Assembly: GCA_977020255.1 (NCBI GenBank)
Contig: CDROCS010000555.1
Span: 620,001-684,000 of the forward strand
Direction of reading: 5' to 3'
Length of the DNA stretch: 64,000 bases
From: Obrimoposthia wandeli
Taxonomy: Eukaryota
This document shows, piece after piece, positions 3,213 to 62,855 of the stretch (positions are counted from its first letter, which is position 1; each line of letters begins with the position of its first letter). A program made the position numbers and the translations under genes. The notes beneath the pieces were generated by a model. The model did no database searches. It was not told the DNA's origin and saw only the letters and a program-made list of their open reading frames with translations.

Positions 3213-3224
3213 ATATATATATAT

Positions 3225-4437: not shown

Positions 4438-4444
4438 TTTAATT

Positions 4445-4453
4445 TTGTTTATA
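4445..4453 (-). promoter_or_regulatory. TATAAACAA motif upstream of ATPase (C)
   Basis: 28 nt before ATG 4425 (16 before ATG 4437). Confidence 0.65.
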
Positions 4454-4757
4454 TTATCATAGAAGTTTCCTTATTGAATAACATAAAGCTAGAGCTACTG
4501 ATGATGAAATCTAAAAATTAATTAATGAATATTTGGATATAATTTTATTTATTTGTGTTCGATTTATAAATTATCTAATAACATGTGATCTAACTAATAT
4601 TTTAATATTATCTCTTGTAGTATTATTATTTTTTATGCAGATAAAATTTGTTTACACTTTATTTTTTTAACAAATAAATATCGTCATTAAGACAATTCAC
4701 ATCATTAACAGTAATTATAGTATTATTCATTTGAAAAAACTATTAATTTAATTGGGT

Positions 4758-4766
4758 TTGTTTATA
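4758..4766 (-). promoter_or_regulatory. TATAAACAA motif upstream of small ORF (C)
   Basis: 36 nt before ATG 4730. Confidence 0.7.
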
Positions 4767-4809
4767 GTTTATAAAATAAAGATAACAAAATGTAATAAAA
4801 TAAATTTTC

Positions 4810-5102
4810 TCAAATCGATTCAACAGTGTATGGATAATACGAATTTCTCAACACCAAAATCATAACTTTACCACTGGAAAATGTATTTACACATAGCGGT
4901 ATAAACTACAAATATCTAAGTACCGGAAAAATCTCAGGTTCAAATATGCATTCTTCTTTAATTTTTTCAGCAATTTTATAAATATTTATTGGTTTCCCGA
5001 CATTGCCTGAGACTGTAATTGATTGTATGGTGCTGATTTGAATTCCAAGTGGTAAATTGGTATCATTCAAAGGTGTTTTGCATCCTATAACACGACAACT
5101 TC
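4810..5102 (-). pseudogene. TBP-like gene, exon 2 (copy C)
   Basis: GSCRVIGCKTP...ECIFEPEIFPVLRYL*FIPLCVNTFSSGKVMIL; preceded by a 31-nt GTTAGT...TTTAG intron at 5133-5103; exon 1 not recognisable. Confidence 0.8.
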
Positions 5103-6583
5103 CTAAAATATTCAATATGAAAAAAAAACTAACTTTAAACAGATGTTCAACATCTTAAACAGAAAGTTTAAAAAGTAGTTCCAAATTTTATATTCAATAA
5201 GAACAAATATTCAAAAATATCCGAGGAGCTGATGCAATATTTTTGATGAATATAGAAGAGATATAGATGTTCATACGTTTCCGAAAAAAGTAGCAATGAA
5301 CAATGAACAGTAAAAATTCGACTGTATGGTAGCAAGAAGGATGGAATGGGAACAAAGCTACTCATGTGGGTAATTGAACGTGCTCATATCCCTATGTGTT
5401 GATAATTTCTTTTTTCTATTTACTTTTTGTTTACCATGTCTCTTTCATTTGTATATTCCTGCATGTAATAAATTGTAATCAGTTTTAATTTTTTTATTTC
5501 ATAATATTTTAATCTTATTTAAATATATATTTTTATAAACATTTGTTTTTTTATCAGATTATTTATTCTAGAATGGACCCTCTTCTGAGTTATGAACGGA
5601 ATTTCTATTAACCGGAAATAATTTCAAAAGGAAAATCGGGTTATATATTAAAGATGCATCAAATTATACGAGTTATGAATCCTGGGAAAATATCAAAAGT
5701 GGAAAATAAATATCTAATTGAAATTTTAACATCTGATGTACAGAATTTCTATTGATCAATTCAAAAATATTTTAGAATTTTACATACCTGGTTATGCATG
5801 CATCAACTTTTCAGGTTGAAAGTGATCCCAGTTTGGCTTTTAGAGATGACCTTGGATATTTGTTTGATCCACTTTAGATGAATAAATATGGAATATTTCA
5901 ATATGACTTAATGAATTTTATGCTGATGCCGATGAAAAATACAGCCTCTTTATTACATAATCACTGCATTAGGCGCTAGAAGATCATATGAATACATTTT
6001 TAGATAAAAACTAAGATCTTGTATTCACTTATATAAGTAGCCACTAGACTTTCATTTAGTGTTCACTTGAACTAACAGTTTTCTTTAATTTGAATATAAT
6101 TCTGACGTTTTAATTAAATTTTTTTACAAGTGATTTAATTAATAAGCTTTATTAAAATTAATTACTTTTATTTTCATAAAACATTTTCTTGAGTATATTC
6201 ACGAAAAATGTGGAAATTTTTACAGCTTTCGTCAAGAACATAATAAGTATTCGCATAAAATACAAATAATATTTTCTGTAAAAAAACAATAAGCGTTCTC
6301 TCTATTTTATGTAAATAAATATTTTTGCTTAACTAACTTAATTTCCTCATTGTTAACATAGGTGTGGGAGATACATCCTTCCCAACCATTAACTCTGTAA
6401 ACCGAGTATCCAAAAAACAAATTTGAAAGGACATTATTAGTGTTTACTAATATTCGATTGTTGTAAGTTCTCGTTTGAATAATCATTAATTATTAAGAGA
6501 AAACAATCATAAAAATCTGACAATTATAAGTGCATAATCTGCATTCAAGAATTCTTAGCTTGGCTATCGGGGAAAATTTCGAG

Positions 6584-8362: not shown

Positions 8363-8852
8363 ATGAAACTCGTAAATATAAATTATAAAGGTAGAATAGA
8401 AGATGATGTTTCGTACTTACCATTCAATGAATGGAAGCCGAGACAATATGTGAAAAAGTTTAATTATTTCACAGTTGTTATTTTTCCCACAGGTTAGTTT
8501 TTTATTTTATTTTCATATTGATTTTTTTTAAGAAATTGTCGTGTTATGGGATGCAAAATACCTTTGCTTGAGATCAATTTATCATTTGGAATTCGAATTA
8601 CTGCAATACAATCAATCACAATTTCAGCTAATCTCGGGAAACAAATAAATCTTTATTAAATTGCAGAGAAAATGAAAGAAGAATGCATGTTTGAACCGGA
8701 AATTTTCCCTGCTCTCATTTATTTGAAGTTTAAACCCCTATGTGTAAATATATTTTCCAGTGGTAAAGTTATGATATTGGGATTGAAATATTTTGATTAT
8801 CCAGACATTGTTGATTTGATTTTAGAAAATATATCTTATTACATCTTGTTAT
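8363..8852 (+). pseudogene. TBP-like (TATA-binding protein fold) gene, 2 exons (copy A)
   Basis: MKLVNINYKG...TVVIFPTG/NCRVMGCK...IQSITISANLG...FEPEIFPALIY...VNIFSSGKVMILG aligns to both TBP core repeats; intron 8493-8531 (acceptor decayed to AA); internal stop 8657; 3' end approximate. Confidence 0.85.
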
Positions 8853-8860
8853 CTTTTTTC

Positions 8861-8869
8861 TATAAACAA
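8861..8869 (+). promoter_or_regulatory. TATAAACAA motif upstream of small ORF (A)
   Basis: 33 nt before ATG 8894. Confidence 0.7.
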
Positions 8870-8893
8870 ACCCGTTTAAACCTATTGTTTCAA

Positions 8894-9170
8894 ATGAATA
8901 ATACTATAAATACAGACAATGAAGTGGATCGTCTTGTCAAAGAAATATTTTCAGGAAAAATTAAGGGTAAACAAATTTTATCAGAATTAAAAAATAATGA
9001 TATAACAAGAGATAACATTAGAAATATTGGTTAGATCACATGTTATTCGAAAATTTAGAAATCGAACACAAATAAATAAAATTATAGCCAAATATTCATT
9101 AATTAATTTTTGTATTTCATCTACAATAGCTCTAACATTATACATTTCAATAAGGAAACTTCTATTATAA
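8894..9170 (+). pseudogene. small conserved element ORF with C-terminal hydrophobic helix (copy A)
   Basis: MNNTINTDNEVDRLVKEIF...TRDNIRNI, frameshift, then VRSHV...LINFCISSTIALTLYISIRKLLL*; similar to 53673-53939. Confidence 0.65.
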
Positions 9171-9179
9171 TATAAACAA
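9171..9179 (+). promoter_or_regulatory. TATAAACAA motif upstream of ATPase (A)
   Basis: 28 nt before ATG 9199 (16 before ATG 9187). Confidence 0.65.
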
Positions 9180-9186
9180 TATTAAA

Positions 9187-9833
9187 ATGAAAGAGTTTAT
9201 GTAATAGAGCTAAATAATAATGCTGTATTTCAAATAGTTGGTCCCAGTGGAAGTGGAAAGACACACTTCGTATGTAAATTGTTGCATAATGAATCTCTTT
9301 TCAATTCTAGTTTCAAAAATATTTATTAGCATCATGGTGGAGGAGGGAAAGTGGACTAACAAGTTGAAGGGAATAAAATTTATTGAAGAATTTGATGCGA
9401 ATTGGTGTGAAATATTGATAAAAAAGATTTAATAATAATTGATGTTTTGTATCAGGAAGCTAACAAGGAATCGAACTTTAATAATTTATTTACAATGATT
9501 GCAAGACATTGTGAAGTAACAGTTATATTTATCACTCAAAATCCTTTTCACCAAGGAAGTCACCATAGAACAAGAAATCTTAATGTGCATTAGTTAGTTT
9601 TATTTAAAAATCCTAGAGATCAAACAGTTGTTGATTTCGTGGCCAGGCAGGCGTTTCCTCAAAATAAGAACTTTCTAGTTGATTCATTCCATGATGCTGC
9701 TAAACAAGCACATAAGTATATATTTATTGACTTTACACAAGCTTGCCCAGATGATTTACGTGTTTTAACAGACATATTTAATTCTAAAGCAGTGACTGTT
9801 TATAAACAATTAGAGAACAAATATAAAAAATAA
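9187..9833 (+). pseudogene. FtsK/HerA-like packaging ATPase (copy A)
   Basis: Walker A GPSGSGKT, FITQN, RTRNLN, FKNPRD, YIFIDF motifs; stops and frameshifts. Confidence 0.9.
9801..9809 (+). promoter_or_regulatory. TATAAACAA motif upstream of basic ORF (A)
   Basis: 40 nt before ATG 9841. Confidence 0.7.
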
Positions 9834-9840
9834 ATTTGCA

Positions 9841-9990
9841 ATGAATTTTAAAAAGTTGATAGTAAAACGTAAACATAAAGTAAAGGCAAAGCCTAAGAAA
9901 TTTAAAAAAAGAATCATTAAGAAAAAGAGAAGTGATAAATTAATCAAGTCTGTTCGAAGTAAAAGAAAACTTAAATGGCTTCGAATATAA
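9841..9990 (+). CDS. 49-aa highly basic protein (candidate DNA-condensing core protein)
   Basis: intact MNFKKLIVKRKHKVKAKPKKFKKRIIKKKRSDKLIKSVRSKRKLKWLRI; syntenic with Lys-rich ORF 54566-54874 sharing MNF and KLIK(S/T)V. Confidence 0.55.
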   Translation: MNFKKLIVKRKHKVKAKPKKFKKRIIKKKRSDKLIKSVRSKRKLKWLRI

Positions 9991-9994
9991 ACAA
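9986..9994 (+). promoter_or_regulatory. TATAAACAA motif upstream of cupiennin-like ORF (A)
   Basis: 31 nt before ATG 10017. Confidence 0.7.
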
Positions 9995-10016
9995 TATTAA
10001 ACATTAACTTTTTATA

Positions 10017-10346
10017 ATGAAGAAAATACAAAGAAGCATACCCTATTTTACAGCTTTGGTCAAAGCCTCTTCTCATAAGAAAATGAGTATTCTTAAAGCA
10101 TTTTCATCTTTTGTTGTAGATGATTTATAGGAAGTTTTGTATAATATAGTTTTGGGTGGAGTAAAAATGGGAAAATGGAGAAATGTATTAAAGAAGTATA
10201 GAAAAATTCTTCTAGATATTGCTAATGTAAAAAGTAAAAAGGAAAACAAAATATTATTCTTAAACAGAAAGGCGTTTTCATATGGGGCTGTTATACCAGT
10301 TGTTGCTTCAATTATCAGTAGTATTATAGCTGCGACACGTACATAA
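10017..10346 (+). pseudogene. small conserved Maverick/adintovirus protein with amphipathic C-terminus (cupiennin-like class), copy A
   Basis: homologous to 54913-55233 (PYF..L.KA.S...ILLDI.N); one internal TAG. Confidence 0.7.
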
Positions 10347-10350: not shown

Positions 10351-10374
10351 TTATTTCAAAAATCACTTAAAGAT

Positions 10375-10452
10375 ATGGGTGCTAACCCTTCTTTACCTAA
10401 ATTTAAAATTTCTATACATTCAAATTGTTGTAATGGAGAAGTTATGATTTAA
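10375..10452 (+). CDS. 25-aa micro-ORF MGANPSLPKFKISIHSNCCNGEVMI overlapping the integrase start
   Basis: read from sequence; homolog at 55239-55322 in diverged element B. Confidence 0.6.
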   Translation: MGANPSLPKFKISIHSNCCNGEVMI

Positions 10453-11450
10453 TCCAAAAGATCCACAGGAGTTTCAAAATTGACAAAAAGAACAAAACAG
10501 AATTACAAGAAAACGCCGAAATGGCTGAGCGATCAGTTAGCTTACAGTCTGAACAAGCCGATGAGAAGAAGGTTTCCAACTAGAGCTTTCAAAACCAGTA
10601 GTCCTAATAATTTATGGCAAATGGATTTGATGGAGATTATTCAATATTCTTCCATTAATAAAGGATACCGATATATTTTAACATGTATTGGTGTATTTAG
10701 CAGGTTTGCTCGTGCAATTCCAGTTAAAGCAAAGTCTTCAATAGCTATGCTTGAAGCCATCAAAGAAATATTAAAAGAGGACATTCCGAAAAATGTGCAA
10801 ACTGATTTAGGAAAAGAATTTTATAATCAGCAAATTCAATCATTATTTATGCAAAATAATATAAATCACTACTCGGTGTTTTCGCAGTACAAAGCAGCAG
10901 TAGTAGAAAGATTTAATCGTACTTTAAGGGATCGAATAAAAAGGTATTTCGCAAAAAATGGAAATAAAAAATGGATCCAAGTTTTACCTAAAATAATACA
11001 TGCATATAATCACTCTGAACATAGAAGTCTCAAAGGAATGAGACCTGTTGATGTTACTAATAAAAACTCTATGGATATTTGGATAGACAGGAATAAAAAA
11101 GAAAATATTAAAAAAATATATATAAGAAAAACGAATATGTTCGATTTTCTAAAATTAGCTCTACTCCATTTATTAAAAGTTTTGATCAGAATTGGAGCGA
11201 TGAAATATTTTGTAAAAGTAACATTGATCAAAAGAGTAATCCAATAATGTATACTATTAAAGATGCTAACAATAATATCGTTCACGGTAAATTTTACGAG
11301 CAAGAACTACAAGTACTATCAAATAAACCTAGCGTTTTCCGTATTCAAAAAATATTAAAATCTAAGGGTACCGGTAAACATAAACAATACTTTGTTAACT
11401 GGCATGGTTATTCAGACCCAACTTGGATATCAGCATCTAATATAATATGA
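10433..11450 (+). pseudogene. retroviral-like DDE integrase with C-terminal chromodomain (copy A)
   Basis: WQMD, QTDLGKEF and VVERFNRT catalytic motifs; QYFVNWHGY chromodomain; early TGA and frameshift near 11110. Confidence 0.93.
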
Positions 11451-12494
11451 AGTCTATGTATATGGTTTTACCTAGTAACGGATGCCCGAAGACTCAGTCG
11501 GGTAATGACGCTAGTAGCTTTATTATCGATTGGGAAAATCCTATAAATCTCCAAGGATAATGGGAAGCGGCTTTAACAGAATTTTCCTTTTATTATTCTC
11601 CAATTACTATCAGAAAAAACTCACATATTTCGTTTACAAAAGAAAATAATATTGAAAAAACAAAATGAAATTGTGATTAGGTTTGATAGTAAATGAAAAT
11701 TCTTTTACAATTGTATAGATAAAAAAGTGAAAGTAATATATGAAAATAACAAAGTCAGATTTAAAAATGGATTAAAATTTATTCAATTTATTCAAATTAC
11801 ATTTGAATCTGAAAAAGAAACTCTTTGATTGTAAACAAACAGTAGCTCGTAATAGACGGGATATAGTCTCATCTAAATCGGTTAGAAATGTTCCTGGTAG
11901 AGTATCAAGAGTGTTGTTATTTGAAACGAGAGTAAAGGATGTTGTGGAACTGAAAAAGATTTTAAAAGATTATAAAATAGACAGTGAAGTGAATTTATGT
12001 AAATTTATACAGAAGAAATTTAGTGAATATTTGAATAGTGAACATTAAAAAATGGTAAATTGACGTTAACAGTAAAGAACAATGTAAAACGGGTTTCATT
12101 TGATGATAAACTCGCTAAAAACCTCGGTTTAAACAGAAATACCTTTAAAACCCGTACAATAAAAACCATTAAAGCTAAAAATAATGCAACAATTTTAAAT
12201 ACTATAAATCATTTATATATTTATACTAATTTAATAGATCCAACGCTTGTAGGAAGACTACGAGTTCTACTTTTGAGAAAAATATGGATATCTCAAAGTC
12301 AAATCAAAGTTGGGGACGTTATCGGTATTCGTATAGATAAACTAATGTATCTTCCAGTTGTTCTCTATTCTATAAACAATATTGAAGTAAATATTAAAGA
12401 TAATTCCGGACAACTAATAGATTTCACGTACGGAGTCAAGATAAGTTTAACAATACATTTAAGAAAACAAAATGACGAATCCAGCAATAATTGA
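11447..12494 (+). pseudogene. minor capsid (penton) protein (copy A)
   Basis: MVLPSN...WENPI...WEAALTEF N-terminus; LYIYTNLI...VG...LLR...YLPV...IEVNIKD.SG C-terminus. Confidence 0.85.
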
Positions 12495-12849
12495 AGCTTA
12501 TAGTCAAATCCAACAAGGTGGAGAATTACAATATTTTGTTGGTAAACAATATGGATTCGGCTGGCTTAGAACATTAAGTAGATTTGTCTGTCTTCTTTTG
12601 AAGAGACTCGGGTGATTTGTATCAAATTTATGAAAGGAAATACCTTTCATCTAAGGATAATAAATAAATTCCAAATTTTTAGAAGCATGCACTCAATGAA
12701 CTTAATAATGTTTTACCTGACGTTGCTAATTTCATTAGAAAAGGTTATTCAAATGAAAGCCAAGAAAGTAGTGGATTTAAACGTAAAAAGAAGCAAAAAT
12801 TAATATAAACAAACGTAAGAAAGTTGAAGGAACAATATTTGCAAAATGA
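12472..12849 (+). pseudogene. conserved Maverick ORF preceding MCP (Q-x-G-x-G motifs, amphipathic helix), copy A
   Basis: QQGGELQYFVGKQYGFGWLRTL...INKRKKVEGTIF; homologous to 57425-57807. Confidence 0.75.
12804..12812 (+). promoter_or_regulatory. TATAAACAA motif upstream of MCP (A)
   Basis: 42 nt before ATG 12846, same spacing as in B. Confidence 0.75.
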
Positions 12850-14047
12850 GTTGAGCCAAAACCGAATTGTGTATTTTTGATAAACCTCTTCCGCAATTTG
12901 TTGTAGATAATGCTTCCTTTGAAGCAATATTTCTAGTTAACTCAATTTCAGGAACCACTTTAACCGATTAAGAATTTAATATTAATGGTTCCAATAGTGA
13001 GTATTTAGATTTGAATGATACTTTGCTTTATGTTCAAATAAAAGTATTAAAACGAGATGTAACACCTGTTAATTATCTATTTAATTCTTTATTTGGTGAT
13101 GCCATTATTACTCTTAATAATGTCAAAAATTGAAGGTGGAAATTCTTCCTATGCTCATAAAGCTTTGGTTGAAAGTCTATTGAATTATAGCACTGATACT
13201 CAAAATTCTAATTTGGCAATCATTGGTTATGATAAAAAGGCTGCAACTCGCAAAGAATGGATTTCAGAATCTGAAGCTTACGAAATGTTTGGGTCTATGA
13301 GATTGAACTTCTTTGAACAACCAAAATATTTTATTCCCGGTGTTAATGTACATCTTCATTTGAAAAGTAATAAATGGAATTTTTCTTTGATAAGCACGGA
13401 CATTCTAAAACCTAGACTTGATATTTTGGATACAAAATTGTATGTTCGAAGAGTTAAAACCGAGCAATCAGTTTTAATGGCACATAATATAGGAATGGGA
13501 AAAAACAATGCTTGTTATCCTATTAGAGAAACTAAACTTATAACATACTCTTTGGGAACGGGTACGCAACCTTTTGATAAGGATCAAAATTTTGGTGATG
13601 AAAGATTAACGAAATTCGTTTTAATTTCATTTCAATATACTGCAAAGTTTCTAGGAAATTATTCGACAGATGTAACTCAATTTGACAATCTTAATGTAGG
13701 TTCAGTGACACTTTCAAGAAATACTGATTATCGCGAAACATATAAAACAGATTTTGAAGGTAACGCTTATGCTTTGGCTTATACGCAATATATTATTTGG
13801 AATTTGGGTCAACGATAAAAATATAAACAATGGTATTTCTTTCACTGAGTTTAAAAGCAGCTGTCCATTCTTCGCATTTGTTGTGGCACCTGACTTTGAT
13901 ATAAACCAATGCCAACTACCAAAGGATGGAAATTTACGACTAGAAATTAAGTTCAATGCAGCTTTAACACATCCTACAACGGTGCTTATTTACGGAGTAT
14001 TTGATTTGGAAATACAAATCAATTAAAGCAGAACTGTCATATTATAA
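12846..14047 (+). pseudogene. double jelly-roll major capsid protein (copy A)
   Basis: KTELCIFD...EYLDLNDTLLY...YAHKALVESLLNY...GNLRLEIKF...TVLIYG; several stops and frameshifts. Confidence 0.9.
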
Positions 14048-14660: not shown

Positions 14661-16688
14661 TTAAACAAAACAAATCAAAAATGATAAATAAATTCGGAAG
14701 TGTCCATAAGCCAGACTAGCGTTCTTTTCTACCCAAAAGCGCTTGTCGTCATTACTACTCAATGCGATTTTTGTTGACTTGTGGGAATACAGTTGGTGGG
14801 CTCTTGAAATAAATCTAGTTTGCTCAATGCTTTCAATACACCCAGTATCATAAACTTTCCGGTAAGCCTCATGTGTAAGATTGCTTTTCCCACACACTTT
14901 GCTCTCATTGAACATGTATTATTATATGCATGTAAGCTGTAGCATTTAGAGTGTAGGAAAATACAATCATCATACAAAACCTGTCTCTCGCTTTCATCCT
15001 TAAATTTCCCTATAATATCCTCTAAACTGATAGAGTGTAGAGAATGGTTAACGGGATATGTATGGGTATCACAGAAGTGATCCCTAAACATTGCCAGTAA
15101 TAATTGATTATCTAAACTAACATGCTTACATTCTAAAAAGAAAGAATCAGTGTCCCTAGCTGCGATTTTGATCTCACAATTGAATTCTTGGCGATATTTA
15201 TCTAATTCTGTATATTGAAGCTCGTACATTCTGAGTTTGGAAATGTCTAAAATCGTTTGACCAATATAATACGGTCGATCGAGACAAATACTCTGTTTTC
15301 CTAATAACACTGCTACCAAGTCATCTGCAATTGTAAAACTACGCTTGAAGTTGTACTTGATAGTATATGTTATTAGTTTACGCTCATTATTGCAAAACCG
15401 TAGACAAATACGCTGCAGTTTTTCCAAAGGGACTATTACGTTTATACTGGTAAAAATCTCGATAAAATTAGATAGGGGCCAAATTATGTTTTCTAGATTT
15501 CTTTTCAATATAGTCTTTAAACACATAGTTTTGACTAAAGCTTATAGCACGATGAATTCGAGTGATTGTCGCTCCCAACTTTAAGTAAAATGGAAGAAGT
15601 CGCCAATCCATTACATAGTTCAACTACTCTTATTGTGTTAACAACATTTTTTTAACCTTTGAATTAGGTCGACATTGATGAACAGGTGCTACTGTAAGAT
15701 CATCTAATTTATCATGCACATTGGGAGGGATTGTTAAGTCAACCTCAATTAAATAGCCGACGTCTGATGAAACTGTATCAACAGTAGTCAAATCTGTCAT
15801 CAACCTATTCAACTCTTCCTCATAATAAATCCACTTAAAGTTGGCATGTGGTAGATGTTGAGTAAGCCCCCACCCATACACATTATTAATGTCGGTGTAC
15901 AGAATCTCCATGGATTGATTTTTGACAACAAGATGTTTGTTGAAAAAAGTCATTCCACCGCGTATACAATAATCCTACATATGATACATCGCGGGATCTT
16001 GCAGTAATTCAATATTAATATAAAGAGTTTTTATTGCCGTTGCCCACGAAAGACCAGGTAAACTAAAGAACTGCATAGGATCTAGCCTATCTTCTGCTAA
16101 AGATTTTACACGAAAGGACTCAAACACATCAGCTAAAAGATAAATGTCTAACTTCATATATAAAAGCATATAATCTAGAAGATTTTGAAAATTATTCTCC
16201 CATAATGTACGAGCCTTATTATAGTCTTGAAGACTTACACCCTCAAATTCGGTTATGGGGAGATTTCTGTAATATTTTGTAAATCTGCGAAGGTTTTCGC
16301 AAATTTATATGAAAAATTCCCCTTATCATTAACCACACAAATAACATGATATACTAGAATTATCTATAGGCATGTTATATAGCGTCTTGTCATCAGGATT
16401 CAGTGTACATAATGTCAAATGTTTGCTGTAAGAGAGTTCGTATCGGAATACATGCAAATATCTATGACATCACTTACACCTTATCCTAACAGTTTAGGCT
16501 CTATTATCTAAATTTAGAAAGTGATCTAAATTGAGAATTGCAGCATAGTGGAATTTCTTATTATGTTTGAGCAAAATTAAGTCCCCTAATTTTTACTCCT
16601 TAAAATTACATCTACAAAAAAAAATTTAAATGTCTTTATCTATTACATTAGCTGGGATATTAGTAATATATTTGTCTCATGCATTTTC
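14661..16688 (-). pseudogene. protein-primed family B DNA polymerase (pPolB)
   Basis: DIYLLADVFE, IRGG, LYTDINNVYG, NSPFGKT, RDTDS, GKFKDE, DDKR...LAYGH motifs; fragmented; 5' limit approximate. Confidence 0.93.
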
Positions 16689-16775
16689 CTGATTAAAAAT
16701 AAAAAATTAAATAAAACATATGACATATTTAATTACAATTTCAAAAAATCATCAGAAAAATCGTAATAAAAAAAC

Positions 16776-16997
16776 CTGATCTAGGCAATCCAACTGTTGG
16801 AAGCTAGTTGGAAGTATTTTTCATTGACAGCATCCATTCAGCTGTCGTCAGTTAACTCAACGAAATTGGATTCCTCGATGTCCTCCAACCAGCTGTTGTC
16901 GCTCTACTGAGGCTGCTCCAACTCGAAATCTGACAGGGTGATATTTTCCATCCAGTCATTTTTTTTAAAGTCGTATACTTTTTTCGATCCAATTCAT
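16776..16997 (-). pseudogene. acidic Trp-repeat segment of element A (unknown product)
   Basis: NWIEK...NDWMENI...NSWLEDI...DS*MDAV...NSWIA; needs one frameshift in a poly-A run. Confidence 0.4.
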
Positions 16998-17059
16998 CTA
17001 AAACATAAAAAAATTCAATATCAAAAATAGATTTAATTGTATCGAAAATACGTATTTCA

Positions 17060-17286
17060 CAAAAAACATTATGTCATTATATCCATTTTAATAAATGAAA
17101 ATAATTAATGAGCTATAAATTAGTAAATATTTTCTTATAATCTAAACTCCTAAACGGGATATCTACATGAAAATATGAAATGTAAAGGATGAAAAACTTC
17201 ACTATATCCATAATACATAAATCTTTTATAATATAATTTCTATTTTTATTAATTAAAGCCTCAAAGTCTATGATATATTCTTGCAT
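17060..17286 (-). pseudogene. DEDD-like exonuclease-family accessory ORF of element A
   Basis: MQEYIIDFEA...YIIKDLCI...L.NY.HLLKW pattern as in Maverick-associated exonuclease-like ORFs (recognised by eye). Confidence 0.55.
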
Positions 17287-17313
17287 AATTACCCAAATAT
17301 TTAGCAAATCCCT

Positions 17314-17322
17314 TTGTTTATA
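17314..17322 (-). promoter_or_regulatory. TATAAACAA motif upstream of DEDD-like ORF (A)
   Basis: 36 nt before ATG 17286. Confidence 0.7.
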
Positions 17323-51111: not shown

Positions 51112-51602
51112 GTCGTCTAAAAAATTCTGTATACTGTCATTTTTAGACAGAATGTCGTTAAAATGTCTAAATTTTAGACAGAATGTCATTTTTTTATAAA
51201 ATTAGCTTAAAATGACTCAAAAAAAAATTCTACAACTCATGTCTGGTGTTGTATGCAGGATTTTGAGACTTGACTAAAAAGTCTCGAAATCACGCATACT
51301 GAACCAATGGTAATAGGTCCCCCTCAGGGGGGTACCTTTTACTGCAAAACCATTTTTGGCGTTGTATGCATGATTTCAAGAACATTTTCAAATATAGCGC
51401 TAAATATCTTTCCATTTAAAACAAAAGGTGATTTTAAGTAGATTTTAAGTGACCAAAGTCTCCCTTACGGAGCCTCCTAAGAGGGAAGCCCTTCATCCGA
51501 AGACCGGGCAGCACCTTTGGCAAAGTTTATATTTATATTACTTTTGTTTATAGTTAAAGAATAATAAAATCAATTAATCATGTATTCATATGATAAATTA
51601 CA

Positions 51603-52112
51603 TTAAACTTTCTTATGTCCTTCAGTAATTCTCCAAATAGGCTTCTGTCTCCCGAGTCTATCGACTTTGAATCCTTGAATTTGAATAAATAAAATCCAAT
51701 AATTGCTTTTGGGAAATTCTTCTTCATAGTAAGTATATATTCCTTCAAACAGATGTTCATCAGCTTTAATAAAAGCACTAAAGTTTTCAATTTTGATATA
51801 TAATTTCATTCTTCTGAAAATAGCATTGATATTGTTAATATCATTTTGATGGATCCTTGAGATGACATAATCAAACTTGGACTTTGTTAGCATAACAGGG
51901 TATTTTAATCCAAAGGTAACAGACATCTTGAGAAAATTCATTGTATAACTGAAATAAGGTACAGATTCTTTGAATAGGTCTTCTGTTTCTCCATTAAAAA
52001 TATCCTCTAATTCTGTATCATCAGAATCTATCTGTACAACTTTGCTTGTATTTAAAATTTCATAATTCTTCTTCTTTGTGCTCTTCAAAATCGGTTTTTG
52101 TAAATTGAACAT
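51603..52112 (-). CDS. hypothetical protein of element B, divergent from the TBP-like gene
   Basis: 169-aa ORF in very AT-rich DNA; no family recognised; may be frameshifted near the 3' end. Confidence 0.55.
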   Translation of the reverse strand: MFNLQKPILKSTKKKNYEILNTSKVVQIDSDDTELEDIFNGETEDLFKESVPYFSYTMNFLKMSVTFGLKYPVMLTKSKFDYVISRIHQNDINNINAIFRRMKLYIKIENFSAFIKADEHLFEGIYTYYEEEFPKSNYWILFIQIQGFKVDRLGRQKPIWRITEGHKKV

Positions 52113-52168
52113 AATGAATGAGAGTAAACTGAAATGTTTCGATAGTTATAGTTGACTACTTGAATCTG

Positions 52169-52205
52169 ATTGGTTGATTCTCATTGGATAATATGAAACT
52201 ATATA
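52169..52205 (+). promoter_or_regulatory. host-type promoter candidate: two ATTGG (reverse CCAAT) boxes and TATATA upstream of the TBP-like gene
   Basis: ATTGG at 52169 and 52183, TATATA at 52200, ATG at 52237; lies in the 124-nt divergent intergenic gap. Confidence 0.4.
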
Positions 52206-52236
52206 TGTTTGTGACATTATCAATTATTATCACATA

Positions 52237-52716
52237 ATGAAAATAATCAATATAAATTATAAAGGTAAATTTAAGGGAAGTGTTAGTCACTTACCTTTTC
52301 GATCAAAGAAACCTATACAATATGTTGAAAAGTTAAAGGATTATACTATAGTTATATTTCCAACAGGTATTATTATTATTATTATTATTATTACTTCTAC
52401 TATTTAGGTTCATGTAGAATTATGGGTTGCAAACAACCAATCAAACATGCTCAAAATATAGAAATTGAATGTATTCAATCTCTAAGTATCCTAGTGAATA
52501 TCAATAAGAAGGTTAATTTGTATAAGATATCTATGAAAATGGGAATAAATTGTATGTTTGAACCAGAATTGTTTCCAGCACTCAGAATTTTAAAATATAA
52601 TCCTCTATGTGTTAATGTGTGTTGCTAGCGGAAAAGTGTTTATTCATGGTATTAAAGATTTTTATTATCATTGTCAAGTCGAGTTTATTGTATTTTTTCT
52701 TGAGAGTTTCTTATGA
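52237..52716 (+). pseudogene. TBP-like gene, 2 exons (copy B)
   Basis: exon 1 52237-52366 MKIININYKG...TIVIFPTG; 41-nt GT-AG intron 52367-52407; exon 2 SCRIMGCK...FEPELFPALR...VNV(fs)FASGKVFIHG; single +1 frameshift near 52620. Confidence 0.88.
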
Positions 52717-52720
52717 ACAA
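52712..52720 (+). promoter_or_regulatory. TATGAACAA variant upstream of IAP (B)
   Basis: 35 nt before ATG 52747. Confidence 0.5.
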
Positions 52721-52746
52721 ATATATGATTTTTTGATTTTTTAAAA

Positions 52747-53649
52747 ATGCTTGTTGATTATATACTTCATTATATAACTGTTGATGATGATGTTTTAGTT
52801 AGACGAAAAGTAGATTATTCTAGAATGAAAGTTTTACACTGGAAATATAGACGTGAAAGTGAAAGATTAAAATCTTTAATTATACATTTTAAAGTGAAAC
52901 AATCTGTATATAATTTAGCTAAAGCTGGATTTTATAAACATTATGATGATTCAACTGATAAAGTAAAATGTATATACAGTCAAGGTGCAATATCCGAATG
53001 GGAATGGTATCTTAAACCAATGAAACAACATATGAAATTTTTTCATACATGTCCATTTCTTTTAAAGTTAAATGTTTCAAATGTACCAATAATTGAAACT
53101 ATAGTCAAGAAAATTGATTTTGATACATCACCATTGATTGGAAAAGTATATGTATCAGATATTGTTCTAAAATTACCTGATACATGTTATTCAAAAAGTT
53201 TAGGACCCTATAATGATGCTAATGTTATTGAGAAAAACGAATCAGATTGTATAATTGAATATCCTTTAACTACGGAAAAATTCGACATGTTGATGGATAC
53301 CAACAACATCAGATATTTGAAAAGGTTTTTCACGAAAGATAGAATAAAATCTGTTTTAAAATATAAAATGATGCGATATGGAGAATACAATTCACTCTTT
53401 GAAATGATTTGTGATTTAAATAATTTAGAAATAAACCCTGAAAAACAATACATAAATATACTTTCATACATGTTAAAAGAACCTAAATGTGTAGTATGTT
53501 TGAATAATCATATTGAATTAGTATTTTTACCATGTGGACATGTAAAAACATGTAATTCATGTTCCATAAGGTTACATTCATGTTCAGTATATAGACATAT
53601 AATTGAAAGGAGAGTAAGAAATGTAAAATTTCATGGTATAAACAATTGA
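52747..53649 (+). CDS. inhibitor-of-apoptosis-like protein (one BIR + C-terminal RING)
   Basis: RLKS...LAKAGFY...DKVKCIYS...W...P..QH....TCPFL; CVVCL...FLPCGH..TC..C....CSVYR; one Zn ligand altered in each domain. Confidence 0.85.
   Translation: MLVDYILHYITVDDDVLVRRKVDYSRMKVLHWKYRRESERLKSLIIHFKVKQSVYNLAKAGFYKHYDDSTDKVKCIYSQGAISEWEWYLKPMKQHMKFFHTCPFLLKLNVSNVPIIETIVKKIDFDTSPLIGKVYVSDIVLKLPDTCYSKSLGPYNDANVIEKNESDCIIEYPLTTEKFDMLMDTNNIRYLKRFFTKDRIKSVLKYKMMRYGEYNSLFEMICDLNNLEINPEKQYINILSYMLKEPKCVVCLNNHIELVFLPCGHVKTCNSCSIRLHSCSVYRHIIERRVRNVKFHGINN
53637..53645 (+). promoter_or_regulatory. TATAAACAA motif upstream of small ORF (B)
   Basis: 36 nt before ATG 53673. Confidence 0.7.
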
Positions 53650-53672
53650 AATTTGATGATATGTATATAAGA

Positions 53673-53939
53673 ATGGAGAAAAACGATAAATTAGTTGATA
53701 AAACTGTTGATGAAATTATAAAAGGAACAGTAAATGGTGTTCAATACTTTTCTAGTTTTAATGGACTTTCTCGTGATAATATAAAGGAAATTGTTCGCAC
53801 CCATGTCTACAGAGATCTCAAATGGAAAAAGGATTTTGAAAATTTCATTCAGATTAATCTTTCAAATATGATGTATATAACCTTTCCTGTATCAATTTTT
53901 AATTCGTTTTTGATGTATATATTAATAAAATGCCTATAA
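53673..53939 (+). CDS. small conserved element ORF with C-terminal hydrophobic helix (copy B)
   Basis: MEKNDKLVDKTVDEII...SRDNIKEIVRTHV...MMYITFPVSIFNSFLMYILIKCL; similar to 8894-9170. Confidence 0.65.
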   Translation: MEKNDKLVDKTVDEIIKGTVNGVQYFSSFNGLSRDNIKEIVRTHVYRDLKWKKDFENFIQINLSNMMYITFPVSIFNSFLMYILIKCL

Positions 53940-53943
53940 ACAA
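53935..53943 (+). promoter_or_regulatory. TATAAACAA motif upstream of ATPase (B)
   Basis: 45 nt before ATG 53980. Confidence 0.7.
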
Positions 53944-53979
53944 TATTCTTATTCTTATCTTCTTGTTCTTATTATTATT

Positions 53980-54553
53980 ATGAAACTTAAAACTAAATTA
54001 TTACAAAACAATCAAATTTTTAATAATCGATTTAATAAAATTTATTGGCATTATGGTGATGTTTGCGAATCCGGGTTAACTAAAAGTGAATTATGTAAAC
54101 TTAAAAAACATTAAATTTATCAATGGTTTTGATCAAAACTGGTTAAAACGGTTAAAACGTGATGGTGTTATAGTAATTGATGACTTGTATGATGAAGCAA
54201 ATAAAGAGTCAAACTTTAATAATTTATTCACAAAAATAGCAAGACACAACTGTGTTACCGTAATTTTCATTACTCAAAACCTATTTCATCAAGGCGATAA
54301 ACATAGAACACGTAATTTAAACGTACATTACTTGGTTTTGTTTAAGAATCCTCGTGATCAAACGGTTATTGACTATTTTTCACGTCAAGCATTTCCTAAT
54401 AACAGGCAATATTTGATAAATTCATTTCAAGATGCAACTAAAAATCCTCATGGTTACTTGTTTCTTGATTTTACTCAATCATGTCCTAATGAATTGAGAA
54501 TAAGAACCGATATATTCAACAAATGTATAGTGTATAAACAAAAACAAAAATAA
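53980..54553 (+). pseudogene. packaging ATPase (copy B), Walker A region deleted, frameshifted
   Basis: VIVIDDL Walker B, FITQNLF, RTRNLN, FKNPRD; MKLKT joins directly to KLLQN with no GxxGxGKT. Confidence 0.88.
54533..54541 (+). promoter_or_regulatory. TATAAACAA motif upstream of basic ORF (B)
   Basis: 33 nt before ATG 54566. Confidence 0.7.
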
Positions 54554-54565
54554 TATTTCTTAAAA

Positions 54566-54751
54566 ATGAATTTCGAAAAAATAGAAATACCTAATTATGT
54601 TGATACAAATTGGAAACCTGGTGATGATATCAAAACTAATCGAGTAAAGAAATTGATAAAAACGGTTTTGAAAGAAAGGCAAAATTCTGATCGGATTTTT
54701 AAAAAGAAGACAAAACCGACAAAGAAACGTGTTAGAAAGAAGAAGAAGAAG

Positions 54752-54782
<31 letters not shown>

Positions 54783-54874
54783 GTGTTAAAAAATGTGTTA
54801 AAAAGACAAAGAATTGGATTGTAATTGATAAAAAGGGAAAACAAAAAGAAAGTTTTAATCCATTTTCTCAATAA
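54566..54874 (+). CDS. Lys-rich basic protein (candidate core protein)
   Basis: 102 aa, syntenic with 9841-9990; contains an (AAG)15-encoded poly-Lys run. Confidence 0.55.
54737..54781 (+). repeat. (AAG)15 microsatellite
   Basis: direct reading. Confidence 0.95.
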
Positions 54875-54877
54875 GAC

Positions 54878-54886
54878 TATAAACAA
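54878..54886 (+). promoter_or_regulatory. TATAAACAA motif upstream of cupiennin-like ORF (B)
   Basis: 35 nt before ATG 54913. Confidence 0.7.
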
Positions 54887-54912
54887 TATATGTACTTTCA
54901 GTTTAAATAATA

Positions 54913-55233
54913 ATGAAAAACGTTTTACCTTACTTTCAAACGCTTTTAAAGGCACCTAGTTCACATAGAGCTCGAATTCTCAATTCATTTCCACCTTTTG
55001 TTATTGATAAATTGGTTGAAATTCTGTTTAATATAGTTAAAGGAAAAGTAAATATCGGTAAACATAAATCGAAAGTTACAAAACACAAGAAAGTATTACT
55101 TGATATTGTTAATACAAAAAGTTGTTCTGGTCGAAGGAAAATAGTATTACGTCAAAAAGGAGGATTTATTGGTGCACTTTTACCAATACTTGCAATTTTA
55201 ATCGGTCCCCTACTTGCTAGAGCTGTTGCCTAA
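54913..55233 (+). CDS. small conserved Maverick/adintovirus protein ending QKGG-FIGALLPIL (cupiennin-like class)
   Basis: characteristic QxGGF motif followed by a hydrophobic/amphipathic helix. Confidence 0.8.
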   Translation: MKNVLPYFQTLLKAPSSHRARILNSFPPFVIDKLVEILFNIVKGKVNIGKHKSKVTKHKKVLLDIVNTKSCSGRRKIVLRQKGGFIGALLPILAILIGPLLARAVA

Positions 55234-55238
55234 AGTAT

Positions 55239-55322
55239 ATGGGAAACAACTTACCTAATTTTGATTTAAAAATAAATTGTTGTAATGGAAACGATATGGT
55301 ACGATCCCGAAGACCCAGTTAG
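55239..55322 (+). CDS. 27-aa micro-ORF MGNNLPNFDLKINCCNGNDMVRSRRPS overlapping the integrase start
   Basis: read from sequence; homolog at 10375-10452. Confidence 0.6.
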   Translation: MGNNLPNFDLKINCCNGNDMVRSRRPS

Positions 55323-56295
55323 ATACAGTGGCGTTGGAACTCTATCATCAAACACCAAGTCGAGCCAAAAGAAAACTCAAACATGGTTGAGCAATCAACT
55401 GGCGTACAGTCTGAACAAACCGATGTGAAAAAGGTTCCCGACACGATCGTACAAGACTAGTGGCCCTAATAATCTATGGCAGATGGATTTGATGGAAATG
55501 ATACCTTATGCGCGTATAAATAGCGGTTACAAATATATATTAACATGTATTGATGTATTTACCAGATTTGGGCGTGCTGAACCAGTAAAATCAAAATCCA
55601 GTAAAGATATAGATGCTGCCAGCAAAAATATGATTGATGTTGTACCCGATAATGTACAAACAGATGCTGGAAAAGAGTTTTATAACAAACATGTTAAAGC
55701 AACTTTTGATATATTAGGAGTAAATCATTACTCTGTGTTTTCACACTTTAAAGCGGCCTTGGTTGAACGATTTAATAGAACATTAAGAGATAAATTAAAG
55801 AAACATTTTGTTGTAATTGGATCAAAGAAATGGGTAACGGTACTAAATAAACTGTTAATTTCATATAATCACTCACCACATCGCGGTTTAGGTGGTAAGA
55901 AACCTATTGATATTTCATTTGATGATTGGTTTTCTCGTAATAAAAAATCAATAATAAAGAAACCCAAATACAAAGTTGGAGATTTTGTTCGCATATCACG
56001 ACTAAGTACAACACCTTTTATTAAAAATTTCGATAATAATTGGAGTGATGAAGTATTTGAAATAGCAAACATCAATTTACGGTCAAATCCCGTAATGTAT
56101 AACATCATAGATGATGATAAAAGTCCGATAGAAGGAAAGTTTTATGAGCAAGAATTACAAGTTATTGATAAACCAAAAGTACATAGGATACAAGAATTCA
56201 TTAAATCTAAAGGTCGAGGTAAGAATAAACAATATTACGTAAAGTGGCATGGGTATAAAACACCAACATGGATAAAAGCGAACCAGATAGAGTAA
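55285..56295 (+). pseudogene. retroviral-like DDE integrase with chromodomain (copy B), one internal stop
   Basis: METIWYDP...; TGA at 55426; WQMD, QTDAGKEF, LVERFNRT; QYYVKWHGY. Confidence 0.93.
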
Positions 56296-57405
56296 AATAT
56301 TTCTATATTATGTTACCATCTAATAGTTGTCCAAACACTCAACCTGATAATACCGGATCGAAATTTATTGTTAATTGGGAAAATCCGATAGAAATACAAG
56401 GTGAATGGGAAGTTGCATTGACAGAATTTACTTATAGTAATACACCCGTTATTTTACACAAGGGTGGTGAAATAAATTATAAGGAATCGGTTAGTGCTAA
56501 GAAAACCGATACTGTCTCATTAAATGTTGAATTTAAAGATGTGGAAATTCATAATGATAAGCATAAACCTGTCAAATTTAATATAAAGAAAATTTCAAAA
56601 GTAGAAATAAAATCATCAAAGCGCATTGCTAATCTTTATTGTGAGTTTGGTACATATGGAAAAGATAAAATGAAAAATGTACTTGTTATAAAATCTTTAA
56701 ATAAACAGAAATTATGTATAAAACTATCGAAAAATCAATTGGGTTTCCTAAATAATCAATTAAACCATGGAAATTACTTAGCATCTGATGATAATGGTAT
56801 TTTAACTGCGCAAAAACCATACATCATAAATATGTATCTACAAAATACGAATATTATAAATTAGGAGAGAAAAATATCAATTCAAAAATCGTGTTTGACA
56901 ACGATTTCAATAGTACAGATTTGAATGCATTAGTTAAATACGTTATATCTAAATGTAATCATATTTTTAGCATGTTTTACATTGAAAAAGATAAATTCAT
57001 TAAATTCAAGTTAAAATCTAATATTTCAAGTACAATGTTTAATAATCGTATGGCATTTGTACTGGGTCTTAATAAAACAGAATTTACGGGTGACGGTAAA
57101 GGCATTCCTCAATTAATATGTAAGTTTGATCACATGTACCTGTATACAAATTTGATAGAGTCTATAAATGTTGGTGGTGTAAAAATACCATTGTTAAAAT
57201 CAATTTGGTTAGATAAAAACAAAAAATATGGTGATATCGCAAATATTACAATCATTAGACCAATGTATCTTCCGTAATATCAACATATATTTCCAATATT
57301 GAAGTAAATATTTGTAATGATAGTGGAATACCGATAAACTTTACTCATAACGAAAAAACTAGTTTAACACTACATTTCCGAAAAGTTATCTATAAACAAA
57401 ATTAA
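56268..57405 (+). pseudogene. minor capsid (penton) protein (copy B)
   Basis: MLPSNS...WENPI...WEVALTEF; YLYTNLIE...VGG...PLLK...MYLP*...IEVNI...LTLHFRK; breaks near 56865 and 57275. Confidence 0.85.
57391..57399 (+). promoter_or_regulatory. TATAAACAA motif upstream of pre-MCP ORF (B)
   Basis: 34 nt before ATG 57425. Confidence 0.7.
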
Positions 57406-57424
57406 ACAATGTTAATCGTTAATA

Positions 57425-57807
57425 ATGTCTCTATTTGATGTGTATAGTACAACCCAAACTGGTAGTGAACTACCTTACCTTGTTGGAAAACAATATGGCT
57501 CAGGTTGGTTAAAAGTTTTGGGACGAATTGCGTTTCCTATACTATCACGTTTAGGACGAATTGGTGCAAAAATACTTACAAATGTAGTAATGAACGATAA
57601 ACCAATTTTGAGTGAACTAAAATCAAATGCAATGAGTGAAGTACCAGGTTTGTTGCCTGAAGCAACAAAAGCTGCTACTCAACTAATGACCGCAATAAAG
57701 AAAAGTCGAAAACGACCATCACAAATTCATGTTGAAATGAAAGAAGAAGTACAGAAAGGTAGAGGTAGTATAAACAAACGTAGAAAAATAGGACCATATT
57801 TGAGTAA
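57425..57807 (+). CDS. conserved Maverick ORF preceding MCP (copy B)
   Basis: QTGSELPYLVGKQYGSGWLKVLGRIAFPIL...QKGRGSINKRRK; comparison with A suggests a late frameshift and original end TIFE*. Confidence 0.75.
57769..57777 (+). promoter_or_regulatory. TATAAACAA motif upstream of MCP (B)
   Basis: 42 nt before ATG 57811. Confidence 0.75.
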
Positions 57808-57810
57808 GAA

Positions 57811-58453
57811 ATGGCATGTGCAAAATCTGAACTGTGTTTATTTGATCGTCCACTACCTCAAATTGCTATAGAAAATGGATGTTTTGAGAATATTTTCCAG
57901 GTTAATAATATTACCGGTAGTAATATTAATACATCGAGTTTAATATCTATTCGAGTGAAACAGAATATTTAGATTTGAATGATTCTCTTTTATATTTGAA
58001 AATTAAAGTTTTAAAAAATAATGGAACAAACAGTTATATTGACATGGTGGAAGCAGATAAATTTGTACCAACAAATTTCTTTTTTCATACACTATTTAAA
58101 GATGTGCAAATTCACCTGAATAATACTTGTATTGAAGGAGGAAATGGTAATTATGCTCACAAGCTTTGATTGAATGTATGCTTAATTATAGCAAAGATAC
58201 GAAAAGTGGTTCATTAGATGGAATTGATTATGATAGTAATGAGAATGTACGAAAAGGGTGGATTGAAAAATCTAGTGAATTTGAGTTGTGCGGTTCAATT
58301 CGATCTGATTTTCTTGAACAACCCAAATATCTGCTTTCCGGTATGAATATCGGTATAAAATTGATTATTTCCAATGCAAACATGTCATTAAAAACAGGTA
58401 CAACTCATTGTAGAATATTAAATCACATTTTGATGTGGAACCAATCTTTATAA
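57811..58453 (+). pseudogene. major capsid protein N-terminal part (copy B), truncated
   Basis: MACAKSELCLFD...YLDLNDSLLY...YAHK..IECMLNY...FLEQPKYL; similarity lost after about 58400. Confidence 0.85.
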
Positions 58454-62698: not shown

Positions 62699-62855
62699 TT
62701 GTCACAGACTAAATCAATTTGGAACACTTAGGAGAATTGTCGCGGACTCGGAGAGTTGTCGCGGACTAAGTCAATTTGGAGCACTTAGGAGAATTGTCGC
62801 GGACTCGGAGAGTTGTCGCGGACTAAGTCAATTTGAAGCACTTAGCGTTGGGAGG
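62699..62855. repeat. 57-bp tandem repeat, about 2.6 copies
   Basis: unit ttgtcgcggactaagtcaatttggagcacttaggagaattgtcgcggactcggagag. Confidence 0.9.

Follow-up and report, generated by a model that had tools for sequence, protein, structure and literature searches.

Introduction

Viruses that redirect host transcription with their own TATA-binding protein (TBP) have been described. In beta- and gamma-herpesviruses, a virus-encoded protein with a TBP-like fold (EBV BcRF1, KSHV ORF24, HCMV UL87) is paired with a fixed TATA variant, TATT, at the TATA position of late promoters transcribed by host RNA polymerase II (PMC4893493). This large vTBP acts with five viral partners (PMC12197705). Cellular and archaeal TBPs recognize the canonical TATA box (TATAWAWR), recruit TFIIB, and form a saddle from two tandem repeats, each with an S1-H1-S2-S3-S4-S5-H2 layout; four conserved phenylalanines intercalate into DNA. 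Giant viruses (Nucleocytoviricota) also encode TBP-like proteins, which work with a viral RNA polymerase in the cytoplasm. Virophages and some Polinton-like viruses carry one short motif before most of their genes, which copies the promoters of a helper giant virus and is read by its polymerase. Finally, a "TBP" gene is labelled on the map of a MELD-virus, a midsize linear dsDNA virus with adintovirus-like polymerase genes (Starrett et al. 2021, Fig. 5 legend, PMC8502044).

We analyzed a 64,000-nt stretch of Obrimoposthia wandeli DNA (the window; GCA_977020255.1, contig CDROCS010000555.1, positions 620,001 to 684,000, forward strand). The window contains three decayed copies of one Polinton/adintovirus-like family, which we call A', A, and B. 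They carry the same TATA-like nonamer at a fixed distance before most of their genes and also encode a trimmed TBP-like protein. These features suggest, without proving, a virus-owned switch for host RNA polymerase II.

Results

A nonamer precedes genes in three copies of one element family

The first-pass annotation reported six exact copies of TATAAACAA in copy B, lying 36, 45, 33, 35, 34, and 42 nt before the ATGs of six genes. We confirmed all six coordinates and distances, as well as a one-mismatch copy at 52712, 35 nt before the IAP ATG at 52747. The motif overlaps upstream reading frames in different phases or falls at or after a stop. The observation holds, and it is stronger than first reported. 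Copies A and A' carry the same nonamer at the same gene junctions, which had been missed. The features of the three copies are as follows.

Copy B
51544..51552 (-), exact nonamer facing the truncated left end of the copy; the sequence turns GC-rich about 25 nt further on
51603..52112 (-), open 169-aa ORF of unknown function, divergent from the TBP-like gene; no Pfam hit, no counterpart in A, and a single-sequence structural model was unusable
52113..52236, divergent intergenic region with two CCAAT/ATTGG boxes and a TATATAT; no nonamer
52237..52716 (+), TBP-like gene, broken once by a frameshift; exon 1 at 52237-52366, a 41-nt GT..AG intron at 52367-52407, exon 2 from 52408
52712..53649 (+), one-mismatch nonamer (52712-52720) and IAP gene (52747-53649, BIR + RING, open); no IAP in copy A
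53637..53939 (+), nonamer (first 9 nt) and small ORF, ATG at +36
53935..54553 (+), nonamer and A32-like packaging ATPase gene, ATG at +45; at least one frameshift, and the P-loop stretch seen in copy A has no counterpart
54533..54874 (+), nonamer and 102-aa basic ORF, ATG at +33; contains an (AAG)15 run
54878..55233 (+), nonamer and 106-aa ORF, ATG at +35
55285..56295 (+), rve integrase with chromodomain; one in-frame stop; no nonamer upstream
56310..57405 (+), penton-like gene with at least two breaks; no nonamer upstream
57391..57871 (+), nonamer and 148-aa ORF, ATG at +34
57769..58453 (+), nonamer and 5' part of the major capsid gene, ATG at +42; at least two frameshifts, then truncated

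Copy A
8363..8860 (+), TBP-like gene with an intervening stretch at the same site as in B; broken by in-frame stop(s) and a non-consensus splice acceptor
8861..9034 (+), nonamer and small ORF, ATG at +33
9171..9833 (+), nonamer and ATPase gene with P-loop; several breaks
9801..9990 (+), nonamer and basic ORF, ATG at +40
9986..10346 (+), nonamer and homologue of the 106-aa ORF, ATG at +31
10433..11450 (+), integrase with one frameshift; the nearest motif-like site is a one-mismatch copy 91 nt upstream
11465..12494 (+), penton-like gene, broken; holds an unassigned exact nonamer at 12371
12472..12803 (+), homologue of the 148-aa ORF, broken; no nonamer at the usual distance
12804..14026 (+), nonamer and major capsid gene, ATG at +42, broken; holds an unassigned exact nonamer at 13822
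14664..17322 (-), protein-primed family B polymerase gene (ATG 17286, many breaks) with the nonamer at 17314-17322, 36 nt upstream

Copy A'
3891..5115 (-), truncated inverted copy (TBP-like exon 2, small ORF, ATPase start), about 81% identical to A; nonamers at 4758 and 4445 sit at the same two junctions

We compared the frequency of the nonamer with shuffled sequence. The window contains 18 exact matches against 3.84 expected (sd 1.95, maximum 9 in 100 shuffles), which excludes chance. Seventeen lie in or at the edge of the three element copies, and none lie in the 34 kb between them (17.3-51.5 kb). The nonamer is the top non-low-complexity 9-mer on the coding strand of A and B. Fourteen of the 17 element-linked copies sit 31-49 nt upstream of an ATG on the coding strand. 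At five orthologous junctions of A and B the nonamer is 9/9 identical, although the proteins are only 33-67% identical and the flanks are at random identity. Information content ends sharply at the nine positions, and one-mismatch variants occur at chance levels. Position 7 is C in every copy, which departs from the A or T of the canonical TATA box. These results support the view that the motif is a selected, strand- and distance-fixed signal before genes.

We also examined the genes that lack the nonamer. The TBP-like gene of copy B has no match closer than 3 mismatches within 80 nt upstream. Instead, as the first-pass annotation had noted, it has two ATTGG (reverse CCAAT) boxes and a TATATAT about 35 nt before the ATG. 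This host-type promoter is seen only in B; the upstream region of A differs. The first-pass annotation described the nonamer as a signal for most late genes, but this label is not supported: the motif also precedes the polymerase gene of copy A, and it is absent before the penton-like and integrase genes.

The gene content relates the copies to Polinton/Maverick and adintovirus-like elements. The minus-strand gene of copy A has relatives 47-61% identical, many of which carry PF03175, although the window's own pieces give no Pfam hit. The integrase ORF gives rve, rve_3, and Chromo hits, each below the cutoff, and has 1351 relatives at E<=1e-5 with PF00665 and PF00385 recorded. For the virion genes we obtained only weak hits, both below cutoff: a DJR-like match for the major capsid gene of A (E 0.011) and Pox_A32 for the ATPase of B (E 0.0044). 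The P-loop in copy A and the gene order fit. No convincing terminal inverted repeat flanks copy A, and B and A' are truncated. We found no hit to a maturation cysteine protease among the ORFs scanned in these decayed and truncated copies.

The element encodes a trimmed TBP-like protein

The exon-2 piece of copy B scores 20.0 bits on Pfam TBP (PF00352), just below the 22.9 cutoff. We turned to an intact 160-aa metagenomic relative, P0001, to which the window exons, compared separately, are 53% and 51% identical. P0001 scores 59.1 bits on the same profile and matches PDB TBPs at 1e-13. Its AF2 model is confident (pLDDT 94, pTM 0.84), and the top 44 Foldseek PDB hits are all TBP, with about 170 aligned columns and TM 0.64-0.74. 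The TBP-like exons of A and B are 54% identical, and the intron is at the same site in all three copies. The protein belongs to a wide, almost undescribed family of 150-170-aa mini-TBPs, with 112 cluster representatives at E<=1e-10.

The C-terminal repeat is canonical, whereas the N-terminal repeat is trimmed, as the first-pass annotation had proposed. An hhalign comparison with canonical TBPs gave 99.6% probability with a 13-column gap where helix H2 of the N-terminal repeat should be. This repeat has a short H1 and no H2, and its stirrup is about five residues shorter. Three of the four intercalating phenylalanines are conserved: F50 in at least 90% of members, and F111 and F127 in all. The first Phe of the N-terminal repeat is variable, and in copies A and B it is Tyr. 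E107/E109 are also kept. One detail of the first-pass annotation was only partly right: the F.SGKV stretch of the C-terminal repeat is out of frame with the rest in copy B, whose gene has one frameshift, but it is intact in copy A.

Discussion

The first-pass annotation proposed that host machinery makes the TBP-like factor early and that this factor then drives structural and packaging genes from a TATA variant. We find this interpretation partly supported. Our preferred, still tentative, model is that TATAAACAA is the core-promoter element of a Polinton/adintovirus-like family, present as a single sense-oriented copy before the polymerase, packaging ATPase, major capsid, and several small genes. 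The mini-TBP gene lacks the nonamer, has a CCAAT/TATA-type promoter in copy B, and contains a spliceosomal intron, so host nuclear machinery would make its product first. The mini-TBP would then bind the nonamer as a TATA variant, with the C-terminal repeat reading the TATA half and offering its conserved E-P-E-x-F-P stirrup to host TFIIB, and the trimmed N-terminal repeat reading the unusual C-A-A end. This would switch host RNA polymerase II onto the replication and virion genes. The sequence data and structure prediction establish the selection and geometry of the motif, the TBP fold and what has been trimmed from it, and the existence of two promoter classes. In contrast, the identity of the factor that binds the motif, DNA binding and TFIIB recruitment by the mini-TBP, and the temporal order of expression are inferences made in the absence of binding, TSS, or expression data, and all three copies are dead relics. 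The invariance of the nine positions and the lack of enriched one-mismatch forms imply, in this view, that every position is read. However, if the TSS lies 28-33 nt from the first T, leaders would be only about 1-20 nt, which is unusually short, and we saw no initiator-like signal downstream.

It remains possible, though less likely, that the nonamer is an ordinary host-TBP TATA box whose three extra bases are fixed for another reason, such as a flanking contact of the host initiation complex. It has a perfect TATAAA core at a TATA-like distance from the genes. Wild-type TBP has been crystallized on an adenovirus major late promoter TATA variant with C at -25 (1qn3), the seventh TATA position, so host TBP may suffice. 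The mini-TBP would then do something else, for example compete with or divert host TBP partners. Its lack of helix H2 and of a full N-terminal stirrup, surfaces that TBP regulators use, would fit a decoy. Against this reading, host TATA boxes are degenerate, but 15 of 15 placed copies are identical across element copies otherwise at random identity, and there is no exact copy in 33 kb of non-element sequence.

A host Forkhead-family factor that binds the embedded ATAAACA core and activates the element's genes, perhaps in a particular tissue, is unlikely. The core fits RYAAAYA, and the exact nonamer lies inside a Biniou/FoxF site used in band shifts in Drosophila (PMC1891290) and inside a LET-381/FoxF motif in C. 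elegans (PMC10943081). Forkhead sites act in either orientation and at variable distance, however, and the single sense-oriented copy per gene at 31-49 nt from the ATG is core-promoter geometry rather than enhancer behavior. The first two bases, which complete TATA, are also as invariant as the Forkhead core.

Reading of the nonamer by foreign machinery, either that of a helper large DNA virus or another element-encoded factor, is more doubtful still. In the helper case the element would be a hyperparasite. The uniform motifs of virophages, the abundance of TBP-like proteins in giant viruses, and the presence of an IAP gene, which is typical of large insect DNA viruses, are consistent with this idea. 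The spliceosomal intron and the integrase chromodomain instead point to a nuclear life, the mini-TBP is nearer to cellular and archaeal TBPs (22-30% identity) than to giant-virus ones (9-22%), and no helper is known. Lastly, a polyadenylation or termination signal (a TATAAA variant of AATAAA) is very unlikely: although the nonamer lies at or near the 3' end of the preceding gene, it also precedes the polymerase gene, where only about 140 nt of non-coding element sequence lies upstream, no copy follows the last plus-strand gene of A, and in B one copy lies about 100 nt inside the preceding ORF.

Comparison with known systems

The first-pass annotation knew of no description of such a switch, which is only half right. 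The principle of a virus-encoded TBP-like factor with a cognate TATA variant is already established in herpesviruses, whereas we found no paper on a Polinton nonamer promoter. The "TBP" on the MELD-virus map is only a label in a figure legend, with no analysis of the protein or of promoters.

We compared the locus with each of the other systems in turn. In virophages and Polinton-like viruses the uniform motif copies a helper's promoters; here the motif is TATA-like and the element brings its own TBP-like factor. The giant-virus TBP-like proteins, also found by fold search, are longer than the mini-TBP, and this element encodes no polymerase subunits in the parts seen. The mini-TBP shares the predicted saddle fold, three intercalating phenylalanines, and the C-terminal stirrup with cellular and archaeal TBPs, but it differs from them in its N-terminal repeat, and the associated DNA signal has C at position 7 and is invariant over nine positions. 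BcRF1, U58, and UL87 relatives appear among the Foldseek hits of the mini-TBP model, but they match only weakly (E 4e-4 and worse, TM 0.39-0.42) and are several times longer (577 to about 1000 aa among the matches). No homologues of the herpesvirus partner proteins turned up in our family scans. Where the herpesvirus proteins read TATT, the element described here encodes a bare two-repeat TBP clearly homologous to cellular TBP, its motif is a nonamer with a canonical TATAAA half, and the polymerase gene is among those that carry it.

Three element copies in the window

We compared the window with itself and mapped its genes at the protein level. This analysis identified three copies of one element family. 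The window contains no N.

Copy B, 51544-58453: the copy in which the nonamer was first recorded.
Copy A, plus-strand genes at 8363-14026 and a minus-strand polymerase gene at 14664-17286.
Copy A', 3891-5115, minus strand: a truncated inverted fragment about 81% identical to A.

A and B share one gene order: TBP-like, small ORF, A32-like ATPase, basic ORF, 106-aa ORF, rve/chromodomain integrase, penton-like, 148-aa ORF and major capsid. Their proteins are only 33-67% identical, so they are old, separate lineages. B has an extra IAP gene (BIR + RING) and a divergent 169-aa ORF, for which a single-sequence AF2 model reached a pLDDT of only 37. A keeps the polymerase gene. The integrase has 1351 relatives at E<=1e-5, some on contigs of 18-20 kb. 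Pfam, PHROGs and PDB sequence searches with the polymerase, capsid, penton-like, 148-aa, 106-aa and 169-aa pieces gave nothing usable, and the polymerase was identified only through its metagenomic relatives, many of which carry PF03175. One integrase relative (protein P0069) and one polymerase relative (protein P0315) are each recorded on an ENA contig of 20,066 bp, and near-complete relatives of this element probably exist in metagenomes. The element is a Polinton/Maverick element of the adintovirus-like kind, although we found no convincing terminal inverted repeats around copy A.

None of the copies can be active. In B, the TBP-like gene has one frameshift and the integrase has one in-frame stop. 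The ATPase of B has at least one frameshift and lacks the P-loop stretch seen in A, the penton-like gene has at least two breaks, and the capsid gene has at least two frameshifts and is then cut off. The IAP, small, basic, 106-aa, 148-aa and 169-aa ORFs of B are open. In A, nearly every gene is broken. The polymerase has at least three stops and one frameshift in its last 430 codons alone, and the TBP-like gene has stop(s) and a non-consensus acceptor. A' lacks exon 1 of the TBP-like gene and has at least one stop.

A' and A lie head to head about 3.2 kb apart and are 81% identical over 1.2 kb (3922-5128 versus 8505-9692), which could reflect two nested or neighbouring insertions or an old inverted duplication. 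The basic ORF of B contains a perfect (AAG)15 microsatellite (54737-54781) that encodes a lysine run. The homologue in A is basic but has no such run. Rfam and tRNA scans of the window returned nothing. The surrounding sequence showed the following features.

17463-18300: GC-richer block that starts where copy A ends.
3078-3461: GC-richer block abutting an element copy and holding an (AT)22 run; like the first, it may be another repeat or insertion.
22840-23268, minus strand: open stretch matching the tyrosine/serine-threonine kinase domain (Pfam E 2.6e-13), probably an exon of a host gene. Together with the BIR/RING gene, it hints at an animal host.
62694-63951: three tandem-repeat arrays with periods of 57, 44 and 108 nt, 93-97% matching.

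Distribution and conservation of the nonamer

The exact nonamer occurs 18 times in the window against 3.84 expected, and no shuffle reached 18. Seventeen copies lie in or at the edge of the three element copies, and there are none in the 34 kb between A and B or after B. An unbiased k-mer count ranked the nonamer as the most frequent non-low-complexity 9-mer on the coding strand of A and B (13 copies), with none in 18-51 kb on either strand. The shuffles and the k-mer ranking led us to reject chance or low complexity as the source of the motif. Fourteen copies lie 31-49 nt before the ATG of a gene on the same strand, and one faces the truncated end of B. The remaining three exact copies have no gene start at the usual distance, which is about the number expected by chance in 64 kb.

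831-839, minus strand: the one copy outside the element copies.
12371-12379, plus strand: inside the penton-like gene of A.
13822-13830, plus strand: inside the capsid gene of A.

We next examined the sequence around the motif. At the five junctions shared by A and B the nonamer is 9/9 identical, while the 40 nt before it and the 30 nt after it are at random identity (25-47% ungapped). Information content drops to background on both sides of the nine positions, and we found no additional signals around the motif and no initiator-like signal downstream. Because this profile rests on exact matches, the sharper point is that one-mismatch variants are not enriched (94 against 90.9 expected). The one-mismatch copy at -35 of the IAP gene is suggestive only because of its position. 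One-mismatch nonamers also lie at the same place in the chromodomain coding sequence of A and B (11379-11387 and 56224-56232), 86-87 nt before the penton-like ATG, but coding constraint (a conserved K-Q-Y) may explain them. The exact motif crosses upstream coding frames in different phases. It is therefore a selected DNA signal with the geometry of a core promoter. A five-codon upstream ORF lies between the nonamer and the ATPase start in A (9187-9204) and A' (4420-4437, minus strand), though these two copies are too similar to tell whether it is selected.

The nonamer precedes the small ORF, ATPase, basic ORF, 106-aa ORF, 148-aa ORF (B only) and capsid genes, as well as the polymerase gene of A. 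It is absent before the TBP-like gene, the 169-aa ORF of B, the integrase and the penton-like gene. The first-pass annotation described a nonamer before most late genes of an element that also encodes a TBP-like protein, and the observation of the motif held. Its interpretation was partly supported. The class carrying the motif is "most replication and virion genes" and not "late genes". In B, the TBP-like gene and the 169-aa ORF share a 124-nt divergent region with two CCAAT boxes and TATA-like runs. The upstream region of A is different, so this second promoter type rests on one copy.

The TBP-like protein

The TBP-like gene of B contains a 41-nt GT..AG intervening stretch (52367-52407) filled by an (ATT)n run. 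A similar stretch occupies the same codon position in A (about 8493-8531) and A' (just above 5103). We treated this stretch as an intron shared by relatives and searched the exons separately. A search with the open frame of copy A identified P0001, an intact 160-aa metagenomic protein that has no intron at this site. The intervening stretch looks like an intron gained in a gene of a virus-like element, and it argues for nuclear expression. The two exons of B are 53% and 51% identical to P0001. P0001 passes the Pfam TBP threshold (59 bits) and matches solved TBPs, archaeal ones best (1e-13).

An exhaustive search returned 734 relatives at E<=1e-3 and 112 at E<=1e-10. About a hundred cluster representatives of 140-180 aa match over the full length. 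Ten sampled representatives and their cluster members come only from metagenome-derived sources, and JGI names some of them TBP. We used an alignment of 41 members to generate an AF2 model, which was confident (pLDDT 94), and its top 44 PDB matches are all TBP. The C-terminal repeat is complete, and its two Phe and the E-P-E-x-F-P stirrup are invariant or nearly so. The N-terminal repeat has a short H1, a stirrup about five residues shorter and no H2, which appears as a 13-column gap in hhalign at 99.6% probability. It keeps only the second Phe. In TBP-DNA-TFIIB structures, the C-terminal repeat sits on the 5' TATA half and holds TFIIB, while the N-terminal repeat sits on the 3' half. The trimming therefore falls where the motif departs from the canonical box, which is a correlation and not a test.

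Possible readers of the nonamer

The reading we consider most likely, though only tentatively, is that the mini-TBP, made from a host-type promoter and spliced in the nucleus, binds the nonamer and nucleates host RNA polymerase II initiation on the other genes. Our analysis demonstrates the selection and geometry of the motif, the relationship of the protein to TBP and the trimming of its N-terminal repeat. Binding of the nonamer by the mini-TBP, recruitment of host factors and the order of expression are inferred. A problem for any TATA reading is that leaders would be only about 1-20 nt.

Host TBP acting alone remains credible, though less likely. The core is TATAAA, and wild-type TBP has been crystallised on a C(-25) variant (1qn3). 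Position -25 is the seventh TATA position. A Forkhead factor is credible because the nonamer occurs in tested FoxF sites, but the fixed orientation and distance argue against it and we regard it as unlikely. Helper-virus machinery is unlikely. A polyadenylation signal is more unlikely still and was rejected mainly on the evidence of the polymerase promoter.

A broader possibility, which is doubtful on present evidence but not excluded, is that mini-TBPs are a widespread, unstudied class of virus-encoded general transcription factors. In this view, a bare, regulator-blind TBP would retarget host RNA polymerase II to a 9-bp viral core promoter and act as a sigma-like switch in small Polinton/adintovirus-type dsDNA viruses, having evolved independently of the herpesvirus vTBP system. 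How Polintons and adintovirus-like viruses control their genes is essentially unknown, and a sharply defined nonamer promoter together with an element-encoded minimal TBP would give these viruses a simple two-tier programme that descriptive data can test. It would also offer a natural example of how far TBP can be trimmed and still work, and the motif plus the mini-TBP gene would provide a compact sequence signature for finding and classifying such elements in genomes and metagenomes.

Comparison with known systems

We searched the literature for related systems. We found no description of the mini-TBP family, of a characterised Polinton or adintovirus TBP, or of a Polinton or adintovirus promoter motif, and the paper on an entomopoxvirus-associated PLV contains no promoter data. 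A 'TBP' label sits on a MELD-virus map in Starrett et al. 2021. The principle of a virus-encoded factor paired with its own promoter element is established for beta/gamma-herpesviruses, where a viral TBP-like protein reads TATT; the system proposed here would differ in pairing a mini-TBP with a nonamer in a Polinton. Relatives of the herpesvirus proteins appear among the fold matches of the mini-TBP model.
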